Below, in pieces: positions 38,601-42,630 of a DNA stretch of 64,000 nt (position 1 is its first letter; every line of letters begins with the position of its first letter). This stretch comes from Dimorphilus gyrociliatus (lineage: Eukaryota; Animalia; Annelida), in NCBI GenBank assembly GCA_904063045.1, contig CAJFCJ010000012.1, forward strand, positions 1,922,001 to 1,986,000, given 5' to 3'. Below the pieces are notes generated by a model, which did not search any database, had not been told where the DNA came from, and was given only the letters and a program-made list of their open reading frames with translations. The position numbers were made by a program, and so were the translations under genes.

Positions 38601-39260
38601 TTACTGATTGCGTCACTTGTGGTTAACTAGATATCTATTAATTCTATTATTTTGTAACTAGAGATTCCCTATCCATTTCAATTAAAATTACAAAAAAAGA
38701 TGTTAACAATATATTATTTTTTAGTTTCCACCAATAGCCATTCATAAAAATCTCGCTTTCAAATAGTATTTGTGCTTTATTATTTTTAAGGATAGTCCTA
38801 ACCTCTATCCGGGTTCGTTTTTGCAAAAAATCATTGAAATCATCACACTTACCGGTTCAGTTTGCAAGACTTGCATGAATGATAATTCTATATGTATGGA
38901 TCCTTCAGCTTCGAAACGATTTTCTGCAGGTTTCAAAGGAAACCAGTTATCCCCCTTGTAGTCTTTTAGATCTTCCTTTCTCAAATTGACTTTTCCCAAA
39001 ACTTTATCCTTGTGAGCTGCTTTTTCGAACACAACAACTGATAAATTATTCCCTAAGAGGAATGGTTCTTGAAAATCACAATCAAATGTTTCATTGTAGT
39101 AGGGATTTGTCTCTTTTCCTCTCACTACAGTCTCGAATACATACTCGTTACCGAGTTTTAACTTGCAAAATGTTCGAATTTGTGCCGGCGACTCTCCCCG
39201 CAACTCCTTCGCCTCAATTATATGAATTTTTAATGTCTCGTACACTGTTGCCGTCGTCAT
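35610..39260 (-). CDS. RASA3: GAP1-family Ras GTPase-activating protein (RASA2/RASA3-like), 787 aa
   Basis: Exons 39260-38853, 37877-37416, 37330-37008, 36938-36589, 36492-35958 and 35895-35610. Domain order is C2A-C2B-RasGAP (FVFLRFFAPAIVNP)-PH-BTK motif (YHPG...CCGR...GCQP). RASA2 versus RASA3 cannot be resolved. Confidence 0.88.
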
Positions 39261-39300
39261 GATGCAGGGCCTATGTAGATTATTTGACCGTTAATTCACT

Positions 39301-39495
39301 TGGCGCGCCGTTTTGTCTGGCGGCCATTTTTAAGTTATCGTGAAGCGTTCGTATTTACTATCAGGTTAGACATTTGTGTCGTATAGTTTTTATTTGGCAA
39401 TCACATTAAAAAACATAAATGAATGTTGTATTTTAAATGTTTTTTTACGAAAACAATCACTTTCGAGATTCAATGCAAAAAATAAGACCGGAAGT
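39301..39495. promoter_or_regulatory. RASA/FBXW7 bidirectional promoter elements
   Basis: GGCGCGCC palindrome, YY1-like GGCGGCCATTTT (about 39319-39330), and a perfect ETS site ACCGGAAGT (39487-39495). Confidence 0.45.
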
Positions 39496-39751
39496 AGAAC
39501 TGATAATTTGGTTTGTGTGGCGTTTTTCCGATATGTGATTTTGTTTGCACATTTTTCACTTTTTGGGAGGTTTTTTTTATGAAAAAACTTATTTTGTGTA
39601 CATGCTGGACATTGCTTTTCCTGATTCTTTCTTCGTAAGGTTAGTGTTTTGTGAACTTCGATTTATTTTACCCTTGGCGTCACACTCTTGTTGGGGTCGA
39701 CGTTGATGTTTTGTATATTTTGACTGGATTTAATTTGACTTCAAATCGTAG

Positions 39752-41428
39752 ATGCCTCCGAAGAGAATTAATTTAAATGCAGCAACTGAGGAGGATTTAG
39801 TTTCATTACCAGGGATTGGCGAATCGAAAGCTAAAGCTATTGTATCGCATCGTCACAGTGTAGGCCATTTTCGGTCTTTGGAGGAATTAAATTGCGTGAA
39901 AGGATTTGGAAGCAGCACAATACAGACTTTAAAGAATAAACTATTTTGCAAACCGTTAATGAAACGTAAAAGTGACAGCAAAGAGGAGAGCAAGAAAAAA
40001 CGCATATGCAAAACGATGAATATCGAGAAGTGGCTCAATGCGTTTCGTAGCTTTAGCGTTTCAGAACAAAGTGACGCTCTAGAACAATTAGTACAAAATT
40101 GCGCTCCATCTCAAGCAAAAAGTCTAATGGCTAGTCTAGAGAGTCAATTTCAACGTGATTTCATATCTTTATTACCTAAAGAGTTGGCTTTATATGTCCT
40201 CTCTTTCTTATCCGCTAGAGATTTAGTGAAAGCAGCACAAACATGCAGATACTGGCTAGTATTGGTTGACGATAACCTCCTTTGGAAGGAAAAATGCGAA
40301 GAAGATGGTGTTTTAATAAGACAGACTCCCTCTTTTAAGAAACTCTACCTCGAACAATTAAATATCGAGCACAATTGGAAAACTATGCCCACCGATGATC
40401 CCCTTGTTTTAAAGGGACACGACGATCACGTTATAACCTGTCTAGAATATTCTGGCGACCGTATTGTCAGTGGATCCGATGATAATACACTTAAAGTATG
40501 GAACTCCAAAACCGGAATGTGTGTTTTGACTCTGCAAGGTCATACTGGCGGTGTTTGGTGCTCCCAGATAATGGACAATAAATTAATAAGTGGATCTACT
40601 GATCGGACTTTACGAGTATGGGATATTGAGACTGGGGAATGTTTGCATACATTATATGGTCACTCGTCGACCGTTCGATGTTTGCACTGGCATGACGAGC
40701 TGGTTGTGTCCGGATCACGTGACGCCACGTTGCGAATTTGGCACGTACTGCGAGGAGAATGCGTGAAAACTCTTATAGGTCACGTAGCAGCCGTCCGTTG
40801 CGTTCAGTATGACGGTAGGAGGGTAGTTTCTGGAGCTTATGATTTTACAGTCAGAATCTGGGATCCGGAAACGGAAGCTTGTCTCCACGAACTTCAAGGT
40901 CATACGAATAGGGTTTATTCTTTACAGTTCGACGGTACCTATATTGTTAGCGGTTCGTTAGATACTTCCATACGAGTTTGGCATGCAGAGAGTGGACGAT
41001 GCTTACACCAGTTAACTGGACACCAGTCTCTCACATCAAAAATGCAGTTGCGCAATAAATTATTAGTCTCCGGCAATGCTGATTCTACGGTAAAAATCTG
41101 GGATGTGGCAAGAGGAGAGTGCTTACATACGCTGGCTGGTCCTCATAAGCATGTCTCTGCCGTCACCTGTTTGCAATTGACACGCCATTTTGTTATTACC
41201 TCATCTGATGATGGCACTGTTAAATTGTGGAATTTGGAAACAGGAGAATGGCTGAGAGATTTAATAAATTTATCATCTGGAGGAAGTGGTGGTGTTGTTT
41301 GGAGAGTGCAATCGACTGATAGCACTTTGGTTTGTGCAGTTGGTTCAAGAAACGGAACTGAAGAGACCAAACTCTTAGTACTCGATTTTAAAGAGTCTTA
41401 TGTAGGCTCAACTCACAACAAACTGTGA
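39752..41428 (+). CDS. FBXW7: FBXW7 (F-box/WD40, CDC4 family) with an N-terminal ComEA-type double helix-hairpin-helix domain; single coding exon, 558 aa
   Basis: aa 5-66: INLNAATEEDLVSLPGIGESKAKAIV...FRSLEELNCVKGFG. A bipartite NLS follows, then the D-domain, the F-box (DFISLLPKELALYVLSFL) and 8 WD40 repeats. Equivalents of the phosphodegron arginines R465/R479/R505 are intact (STVRC, GSRDA, AAVRC). Confidence 0.95.
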   Translation: MPPKRINLNAATEEDLVSLPGIGESKAKAIVSHRHSVGHFRSLEELNCVKGFGSSTIQTLKNKLFCKPLMKRKSDSKEESKKKRICKTMNIEKWLNAFRSFSVSEQSDALEQLVQNCAPSQAKSLMASLESQFQRDFISLLPKELALYVLSFLSARDLVKAAQTCRYWLVLVDDNLLWKEKCEEDGVLIRQTPSFKKLYLEQLNIEHNWKTMPTDDPLVLKGHDDHVITCLEYSGDRIVSGSDDNTLKVWNSKTGMCVLTLQGHTGGVWCSQIMDNKLISGSTDRTLRVWDIETGECLHTLYGHSSTVRCLHWHDELVVSGSRDATLRIWHVLRGECVKTLIGHVAAVRCVQYDGRRVVSGAYDFTVRIWDPETEACLHELQGHTNRVYSLQFDGTYIVSGSLDTSIRVWHAESGRCLHQLTGHQSLTSKMQLRNKLLVSGNADSTVKIWDVARGECLHTLAGPHKHVSAVTCLQLTRHFVITSSDDGTVKLWNLETGEWLRDLINLSSGGSGGVVWRVQSTDSTLVCAVGSRNGTEETKLLVLDFKESYVGSTHNKL

Positions 41429-41669
41429 TACGCATCTGTGTTTTACTTTTTTAAAAATCTAATTACTTTTTTTTTATTTACTTTGTCCAAACTAATAGAG
41501 TTTTATATTGTTTTTTTGTCAATTGTATTTTTTCTTTTTTTTTTTCGCATGTAGACATTTTATAATCGTGCGTTACTCGTCCAAAAAAAATTTTAAATAT
41601 TTCCCATTTTATTGTACATTTAAAAAACAGAAAAACAAAAAGGTACAAAAACAATAAAAGAATTTAGAT

Positions 41670-42113
41670 TCAAAGCCTCGCGGCATTGGCAATAATTTTA
41701 TTTCGTTGTATTGCAACTCTGACAACATTTATAGTTAATTCGACTGAATAGTAAAAAAGGAACAACCAGGCTGGTATTAGAATGAAGTAGTATTTGAAAT
41801 TTTCATAAATTTCCATCTTCAAGCAAAATAATACTTCGAATAAAGTTTTGGATATAATTGTTGCTATATAAAAACAAGTTTTTGTCCTCGAAACGTGAGA
41901 TTCACGAGATCTATGGTTCGGAGGGTAGCCGTTTTTGCAATATTTAGCTAGGTAGATCGCTAAATCTAAAAGAACAGCTAGGTCCCATATCCAAACTGGA
42001 ATAAAAACTAAGAACCAATTCCAAATTATTTTCTTGTCTAACTTTAATGCAAGAAATATACAAAATAATAGCATTACGAGCCAAGAAAGTAAAACTCTGC
42101 GTACAAACGACAT
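41670..42113 (-). CDS. TMEM60: Transmembrane protein 60
   Basis: Single exon from the ATG at 42113: MSFVRRVLLSWL...LALKLDKKIIWNWFLVFIPVWIWD, matching the TMEM60/TMEM185 family. Confidence 0.9.
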   Translation of the reverse strand: MSFVRRVLLSWLVMLLFCIFLALKLDKKIIWNWFLVFIPVWIWDLAVLLDLAIYLAKYCKNGYPPNHRSRESHVSRTKTCFYIATIISKTLFEVLFCLKMEIYENFKYYFILIPAWLFLFYYSVELTINVVRVAIQRNKIIANAARL

Positions 42114-42630
42114 TCTCTTGACATTATCGCTCACTATGGTCACCTGTTCCACTCAATTAGGTATTCAGTCATTTTAACATCGAAAAAGTAACTTCCCGGC
42201 ATACTGTTTCCGTCTTCCATTTTGATTTATCGCCTGGTGCCGTTTTGACTAAATATTGTCGATTATCGAAGATCGAAAATTACGATATTCTTCTAAATAT
42301 ATTAGAAATTACGATCTCATTATATTTATTAATTTGGAATTTAAAAGTATTATGATTTTCTTTTTTTTTTAACTTACTGTAAGCAGGTTAAATTCTGAAT
42401 GAACTATACTTGAGGAGTTACTATGAAAGAAGGCCTATTTAAAAGCTTTTAGGGAATATGCTTTGAAAACGATAACCTCCTAATCGAATTCGACGATTTT
42501 ATTCATATAATCTTATATATCGATATCACCACGATTAATTTGTACCACCATCGATTTGATTTGCGACAATATCATTTTTTAGCGATTTAGTTTAAAAGAA
42601 TTTCCCTTTCTCCCTCGTTTTCTCTGAAAC

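Follow-up and report, generated by a model that had tools for sequence, protein, structure and literature searches.

FBXW7 is the substrate receptor of a Skp1-Cul1-F-box (SCF) ubiquitin ligase in which the F-box recruits Skp1-Cul1-Rbx1, the D-domain dimerizes, and an arginine triad of the WD40 propeller binds the phosphodegrons of nuclear regulators (Myc, cyclin E, the Notch intracellular domain (ICD) and Jun). To our knowledge, the corresponding proteins Ago (Drosophila), SEL-10 (C. elegans) and Cdc4 (yeast) have no helix-hairpin-helix (HhH) domain, and canonical vertebrate FBXW7 carries long, disordered, isoform-specific N-termini. Here we describe a gene at positions 39752..41428 of a 64,000-nucleotide (nt) window of the genome of the annelid Dimorphilus gyrociliatus (contig CAJFCJ010000012.1, positions 1,922,001 to 1,986,000), whose product places a double HhH domain, (HhH)2, in front of a complete FBXW7. 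An earlier note, made from the letters of the window alone, had taken this for a new, lineage-specific fusion of FBXW7 with a ComEA-type DNA-binding domain. Our analysis leaves us nearly certain that the gene is instead the ordinary FBXW7/Cdc4/Sel-10/Ago ortholog of this worm, with the ancestral animal architecture. The fuller account, in which the ancestral-form ortholog also uses its HhH domain as a DNA tether, is the one we prefer as a whole and hold with moderate confidence.

The coding sequence (CDS) is complete and intronless, with 558 codons plus stop, and lies on the plus strand, as do all features below unless noted. TAG lies immediately 5' of ATG 39752 in the genomic sequence and no internal stop interrupts the open reading frame (ORF), which was supported by both the ORF listing and RNA contigs. 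The (HhH)2 domain (39764..39943, residues 5-64) matched Pfam family HHH_3 (PF12836) with E 2e-17 and 63.4 bits (cut-off 27) over profile positions 5-64 of 65, and the family HHH (PF00633) matched residues 7-33. Both GhG hairpins can be read in the sequence, in LPGIGESKAKAI and VKGFGSSTIQTL (GIG, G21-I22-G23; GFG, G51-F52-G53). A short basic linker follows (39950..40015, residues 67-88) with Met70 within it and Met89 at its end; it contains KRKSDSKEESKKKR, which fits the bipartite nuclear localization signal (NLS), as a pattern match only. Residues 91-136 (40022..40159) aligned to residues 234-279 of the 707-aa mammalian FBXW7 at 43% identity, which identifies them by alignment as the D-domain directly preceding the F-box, predicted to dimerize. 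The F-box itself, the Skp1-binding module (40163..40297, residues 138-182), matched PF12937 with E 6e-14 and is 78% identical to that of mammalian FBXW7.

The WD40 propeller (40376..41389, residues ~209-546) was recognized by seven WD40 Pfam stretches and by whole-propeller models, and its core aligned to mammalian FBXW7 without gaps at 74% identity; it is predicted to have eight blades, the eighth placed by homology. Over residues 91-546 the identity to the 707-aa mammalian protein is 68.6%. All eight phosphodegron contacts compared are identical, R441, S462, T463, R465, R479, R505, Y519 and R689 of the 707-aa form corresponding to R285, S306, T307, R309, R323, R349, Y363 and R533 here, so that the arginine triad (R465, R479 and R505; here R309, R323 and R349) is intact. 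By homology, the worm protein should act as an SCF substrate receptor for phosphorylated nuclear regulators. The layout given in the earlier note, an unbroken 558-aa ORF with an N-terminal double HhH, a bipartite NLS pattern, D-domain, F-box, WD40 propeller and three phosphodegron arginines, thus stands.

The N-terminal domain, as modeled, has a ComEA/EEPD1-type (HhH)2 fold, and here too the earlier assignment held up. An AlphaFold model of residues 1-72, built on a 17-sequence alignment, had a predicted local distance difference test (pLDDT) score of 84.6 and helices at residues 13-17, 24-37, 43-48 and 54-61. Foldseek matched this model to ComEA of G. stearothermophilus (8dss; root-mean-square deviation (rmsd) 0.9 Å over 61 columns, query TM-score (TMq) 0.80, 46% identity), to the ComEA-related structure 2duy (rmsd 0.8 Å) and to the C-terminal HhH of KIF22 (2edu; TMq 0.67), with further matches to Tex, PsbU, the TEFM N-domain and the ERCC1/XPF dimerization HhH. 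Atlas models of ComEA-type and EEPD1 HhH domains superposed with TM 0.90-0.94. Sequence matches in the PDB were to EEPD1 (E 1e-19; two domains with 41.8 and 28.3 bits), ComEA (E 2e-12, 47.7 bits) and KIF22 (E 5e-3). Because the best per-domain scores are similar (41.8 versus 47.7 bits) and so short a domain gives no reliable tree, we make no call on whether EEPD1 or ComEA is closer.

Each of these relatives resembles the worm protein in a different respect. EEPD1 (PDB 9yi2) is a eukaryotic, dimeric protein with N-terminal, flexibly tethered (HhH)2 modules whose number sets the affinity for DNA (PMC12988330); it differs in carrying two modules per chain on an EEP domain, whereas the worm protein has one on an F-box/WD40 receptor. 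Bacterial ComEA (8dss, 8dfk, 2duy) shares the fold (rmsd 0.8-0.9 Å, 38-46% identity) and both GhG hairpins, but functions in transformation, as a DNA receptor in the periplasm or membrane, and since the animal HhH domain is ancient we see no sign of a recent bacterial transfer. In KIF22/Kid (2edu), also an animal protein, one ComEA-like HhH module tethers a separate activity to chromosomes; this activity is that of a kinesin motor, not of a ubiquitin ligase receptor, and the module lies at the C-terminus.

Transcript data bear directly on whether the two parts belong together. Two RNA contigs, X1 (1132 nt, from a coral-tank metatranscriptome, RNA-Seq) and X12 (1828 nt, RNA-derived, word depth 424), contain a 5' untranslated region (UTR) exon, starting at 39501 or 39515 and ending at 39639, spliced straight onto ATG 39752 (joint 39637>39750, cut +2). 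The 112-nt GT..AG intron removed in this way (39640..39751) is the only one in the gene, and its junction was also found in L004, a spliced transcript contig from a lineage ~10% diverged. The starts of the RNA contigs cluster at 39497-39515, and the non-coding exon 1 extends over 39497..39639. X12 is colinear with the whole ORF and continues to 41452; the X1 contig stops at 40722, and two more contigs of the X1 set cover 40749-41496. Because the spliced contigs join the 5'UTR exon to the ATG, the HhH domain is encoded in the mature mRNA, and the CDS is free of introns. The argument of the earlier note that a fusion with no intron between its modules is no gene-model artifact is therefore borne out by RNA colinear with the ORF, and its concern that transcripts might begin downstream and exclude the HhH domain is met by starts that lie upstream and include it.

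The same data weigh on a technical origin of the joint, as an assembly chimera or as a piece of contaminating bacterial ComEA attached to a eukaryotic gene. The resemblance of the HhH domain to bacterial ComEA (46% identity to 8dss) is what such an origin would predict, but RNA contigs obtained independently in several runs reach from the 5'UTR through the HhH to the F-box, and an independent, syntenic 26-kb genomic contig from another lineage (~10% diverged) carries the same 558-aa gene beside the same C2-C2-RasGAP-PH neighbor. In all, two 558-aa versions from other samples, 98% and 97% identical, fell into the same 90% cluster, one of them being that of the genomic contig. As the architecture is also common to orthologs across animals, we give a chimera next to no credence; the possibility had been raised in the earlier note, and the fusion is real.

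The distribution of the architecture was examined with residues 1-200 as homology query, taking the ~120 best matches with their precomputed Pfam domains. All of these carry PF12836 together with F-box families, and all but two fragments carry WD40 as well. Among the matches listed, the HhH-FBXW7 architecture occurs in at least 10 phyla. They include Cnidaria (Nematostella), Mollusca (Haliotis, Magallana, Biomphalaria, Aplysia, Pinctada and others), Annelida (Owenia), Nemertea (Lineus), Brachiopoda (Lingula), Hemichordata (Glandiceps), Echinodermata (Strongylocentrotus, Lytechinus, Acanthaster, Asterias and crinoids) and Cephalochordata (Branchiostoma), and among arthropods the crustaceans Daphnia, Penaeus, Homarus and Procambarus as well as ticks and mites. 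Vertebrate genes labeled 'FBXW7-like' carry it in rays, sharks, lungfish, newt, caecilian, turtles, squamates and birds. Proteins from mammals, teleosts or insects with an HhH domain were not seen among these matches, no search having been aimed at those groups.

When 14 N-termini were rescanned with Pfam, HHH_3 scored above the gathering threshold at the extreme N-terminus (residues ~3-95) in every one, and the order HHH_3, linker, D-domain, F-box, WD40 was that of the worm protein in all 14. Orthologs from Owenia (P0286), Magallana (P0290), S. purpuratus (P0275), Nematostella (P0354), Chrysemys (P0363) and Protopterus (P0383) have this same order with the HhH domain at the very N-terminus. 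Seventeen HhH domains could be aligned with a single-residue gap only and have N9, G21, A27, R34 and F40 in common, with a closing Cys in 16 of the 17. Both GhG hairpins are intact in all 11 aligned invertebrate and cnidarian sequences except that of the tick, whose first hairpin is GVC. Vertebrate FBXW7-like proteins have K-G-I-T in place of G-h-G at the second hairpin, and RRRAR follows the first hairpin. By contrast, HHH_3 was absent from all six canonical vertebrate FBXW7 proteins of several lengths that were scanned with Pfam. These share with the worm protein the D-domain, F-box, eight-blade WD40 propeller and identical phosphodegron contacts (68.6% identity), but have no HhH domain (6/6), and their long disordered isoform-specific N-termini stand in place of the 74-residue HhH-F-box spacer of the worm.

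The outcome depended on the query. Residues 1-135 matched only the worm protein itself; the apparently worm-only HhH-FBXW7 was a sensitivity artifact of word seeding and database size, and was overturned by the query of residues 1-200. With residues 70-558, the matches listed comprised only HhH-less vertebrate FBXW7, at 64-67% identity. Residues 1-88 searched against 50%-clustered representatives found the HhH-bearing FBXW7 proteins collapsed into generic FBXW7 clusters, the top 150 being HhH proteins with many repeats, which outrank single domains through their summed scores. A search of the Atlas with residues 1-200 returned generic F-box or HhH clusters only, with scores <0.8. The nearest non-FBXW7 relatives of the HhH domain among the matches listed (50% representatives) are proteins of 200-2800 aa with 3-12 tandem HHH_3 repeats, 31-49% identical per repeat. 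Several HhH-bearing FBXW7-like proteins from birds (P0358, P0378, P0387) are labeled 'ribosomal RNA-processing protein 8 isoform X', probably because the gene models were merged with, or misnamed after, a neighboring RRP8 gene.

We next consider the origin of the domain. In an IQ-TREE tree of 34 proteins rooted on Nematostella, canonical FBXW7 formed one clade (100/100) and HhH-bearing FBXW7-like another (100/98), and the two were sisters (100/100). The invertebrate proteins, including that of the worm, all fell outside the vertebrate clades (100/100). Since the canonical and HhH-bearing vertebrate copies are sisters, the canonical copy appears to have lost the domain, and the most economical reading of these sequences is that the ancestor had the HhH domain, that the gene was duplicated on the stem of the vertebrates and that the canonical copy lost the domain. 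The HhH domain is likewise ancestral, not captured in the worm lineage, because orthologs from Cnidaria to vertebrates have the same N-terminal HhH. One caution for the placement of the worm gene as an ordinary ortholog is the great length of its end branch (2.37); with it, the tree supports a position outside the vertebrate clade and no finer placement.

The earlier note had suggested that the HhH domain was possibly captured onto a retro- or intron-lost FBXW7. Taken as a recent event in this lineage, with a transposon or an EEPD1-like gene as donor and a retrocopy of FBXW7 as recipient, this would make the architecture new and lineage-restricted. A CDS without introns, as in a retrocopy, fits such an event, as did the matching of residues 1-135 to themselves only. 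It is nevertheless very improbable: residues 1-200 retrieved the same architecture in at least 10 phyla, as confirmed by Pfam and alignment; the Owenia gene has at least 13 coding exons, with the HhH domain encoded by its first two exons; and loss of CDS introns suffices to explain the structure of the worm gene. Neither the capture nor the lineage-specific novelty proposed in that note is thus supported, the N-terminal HhH being common to FBXW7 orthologs from Cnidaria to vertebrates.

Its statement that no HhH-FBXW7 architecture had been described fared less simply. The architecture is widespread and present in databases under the names FBXW7 and FBXW7-like, which goes against the statement; on the other side, we found no paper on the HhH domain of FBXW7 or FBXW7-like in the open-access literature and bioRxiv. 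A survey of Xenopus F-box genes lists Fbxw7-like genes and leaves the HhH domain unmentioned (PMC4556705), and the paper on the EEPD1 structure does not mention F-box proteins (PMC12988330).

Whether the domain is maintained in the worm was addressed by Nei-Gojobori counts of dN/dS (the ratio of non-synonymous to synonymous divergence, dN and dS), pairwise among the window, L004 and a further lineage, L001. Between the window and L001 the HhH codons differ by 22 synonymous and 2 non-synonymous changes (dS 0.82), giving a dN/dS of 0.016 compared with 0.017 for the rest of the protein. The corresponding values were 0.037 and 0.023 for the window versus L004, and 0.021 and 0.015 for L001 versus L004. 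Over the three pairs, 22-23 synonymous stand against 2-5 non-synonymous changes in the HhH domain at lineage dS values of 0.5-0.9, and linker residues 67-88 show zero non-synonymous changes across the three lineages. Purifying selection acts on the HhH domain as strongly as on the remainder of the protein. Public runs contain at least four sequence lineages, at ~0.5% (X1), 4.5% (X2/X4) and ~10% (L001, L004) from the window and with all 558 codons (39750-42139); this spread suggests a species complex of this worm, present in coral aquaria.

The leader of the mRNA raises the question of which product is made from it. Exon 1 contains three conserved upstream ATGs (uATGs). The first opens an upstream ORF (uORF1, 39533) that reads ATG-TGA, and the second a uORF of 19 codons (uORF2, 39579-39638). 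The third, uORF3 (MLDIAFPDSFFVRCLRRELI; 39602-39639 then 39752-39776), has 20 codons, spans the splice junction and overlaps the main ATG out of frame, its stop lying 25 nt into the CDS. The 143-nt exon is 87-90% identical among the three lineages compared with 61% for the intron. Two internal methionines, Met89 and Met70, the latter immediately ahead of the NLS, are retained throughout the three lineages.

These features are compatible with a main product that lacks the HhH domain, in which uORF3 carries ribosomes past Met1 and translation re-initiates at Met70 or Met89, yielding two isoforms per mRNA with the HhH form minor or regulated. The conservation of the three uATGs and their exon despite dS 0.5-0.9, the end of uORF3 inside the CDS and the two conserved internal methionines all favor such an arrangement, as does the use of isoform-specific N-termini by vertebrate FBXW7. 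However, the context of Met1 (AAGATGC, A at -3) is better than those of the uATGs, which have T or weak contexts, and leaky scanning to Met1 is therefore likely. Moreover, because the HhH codons are under strong purifying selection, the domain must be translated often enough to matter. We consider an HhH-less main product unlikely.

What, then, might the domain do? The precedents of EEPD1 (PMC12988330) and KIF22/Kid led us to propose a DNA tether. In this scheme, which extends the known activities of FBXW7 by homology, the F-box would recruit Skp1-Cul1-Rbx1, the D-domain would form the dimer and the arginine triad would hold phosphorylated degrons. Each D-domain dimer would then carry two flexibly tethered (HhH)2 modules beside the basic NLS linker, and the paired modules and linker together may make a weak, sequence-independent contact with the backbone of double-stranded DNA. 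Such contact could enrich the ligase on chromatin, the site of action of its substrates. Pairing may be relevant here: in EEPD1, an isolated (HhH)2 domain gives no stable DNA binding, and the more modules the dimer contains, the higher its affinity (PMC12988330). By analogy with these proteins, we give the HhH domain a little less than an even chance of being a DNA tether.

Several observations weigh against the tether. The failure of isolated EEPD1 modules to bind is one of them. The net charge of the HhH domain is +1 in the worm and ranges from -4 to +2 in invertebrates, many being neutral or acidic, whereas the vertebrate FBXW7-like domains are more basic (+2 to +6). The structural matches also include PsbU and the TEFM N-domain, neither of them a known DNA binder, and the overlapping uORF3 could divert some ribosomes past Met1. 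Net charge was dropped as a decisive proxy for DNA binding, since the HhH domain of ComEA, a DNA binder, is also approximately neutral in our alignment.

Some of these points would be equally at home with a protein-protein or regulatory module that docks a partner or class of substrates, oligomerizes as in ERCC1-XPF, or folds onto the propeller or F-box to gate activity. Such a role is suggested by the neutral to acidic charge in most orthologs, by the ERCC1/XPF dimerization HhH among the structural matches alongside PsbU and TEFM, by the G-I-T that replaces G-h-G in the second hairpin of vertebrate FBXW7-like proteins, and by the behavior of the isolated EEPD1 modules (PMC12988330). On the other hand, the best matches in sequence and structure, ComEA, EEPD1 and KIF22, are proven or accepted DNA binders; the GhG hairpins are intact here and in the aligned invertebrate and cnidarian sequences, the tick apart; a nuclear targeting pattern is present; and the known substrates are chromatin-bound. 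A module of this kind is possible, though we rate it as rather doubtful.

Returning to the DNA tether, its extension to the whole family is tentative, and we lean somewhat against it: the ancestral FBXW7 would have been tethered to DNA or chromatin by an (HhH)2 domain kept for more than 600 million years, from cnidarians to birds, lost only in the canonical vertebrate paralog and apparently never studied. For the locus itself, our results are deflationary, replacing a new fusion with an ordinary, compact and intronless ortholog from a widespread animal family. The interest that remains lies in an apparently unstudied, deeply conserved ComEA/EEPD1-type HhH on the ancestral animal FBXW7, which the second vertebrate paralog, FBXW7-like, keeps in sharks, lungfish, amphibians, reptiles and birds. 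If the tether is real, it bears on how SCF(FBXW7) finds chromatin-bound Myc, Notch ICD and cyclin E, and on what the isoform-specific N-termini of canonical vertebrate FBXW7 replaced. The worm protein, with its 74-residue linker and intronless gene, would be a minimal natural construct for testing the HhH domain. A divergent Myc pathway has been reported in the Dimorphilus lineage (PMC7854359), and this adds a reason, particular to this worm, to study its Myc ligase.

The worm copy differs from its HhH-bearing orthologs in a short linker, a diverged HhH domain, the lack of CDS introns and its long branch. The 74 residues between HhH and F-box form the shortest spacer among those compared (115-441 in other animals), in a protein of 558 aa against 547-961 aa in HhH-bearing relatives. 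Median identity of the worm HhH to other HhH domains is 38%, versus 49% among invertebrates. Whereas the Owenia ortholog has at least 13 coding exons, and thus at least 12 coding introns, one of them inside the HhH near residue 38, the worm CDS has none. In this lineage the linker was shortened and all coding introns were lost, with only the 5'UTR intron kept. Intron loss has been reported as part of the compaction of the Dimorphilus genome (PMC7854359), and the AT-rich, compact sequence of the window is in line with that description. An intronless CDS with intron-rich relatives (0 versus at least 12 introns in Owenia) is the pattern expected of a retrogene; a retrocopy could have taken the place of its parent, or reverse transcriptase could have mediated a loss of 3' introns, and the two fit equally well. 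Among the matches listed there was no second FBXW7 copy of this worm, of whose genome the 64-kb window was covered.

Just 5' of the transcript starts lies an ETS-like motif, ACCGGAAGT (39488..39496), which is 100% conserved between the window and L001 where the upstream flank is 67% identical; from its sequence and position it is likely a core promoter element. The interval 39261-39500 is a short divergent promoter shared with the minus-strand C2-C2-RasGAP-PH gene (ATG at 39260), and within it, at 39300-39309, is a conserved, E2F-like palindrome, TTGGCGCGCC. At the other end of the gene, the 3'UTR begins at 41429 and extends at least to 41496, RNA contigs reaching 41452-41496 and others continuing to 42014. 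A TMEM185-like gene (Tmemb_185A Pfam match) lies convergent with it on the minus strand at 41670-42152. Contigs X2, X4 and X12 run from the 3' end of the FBXW7 gene into this neighbor (41467-42152), reflecting either an overlap of 3'UTRs or DNA within the contigs.

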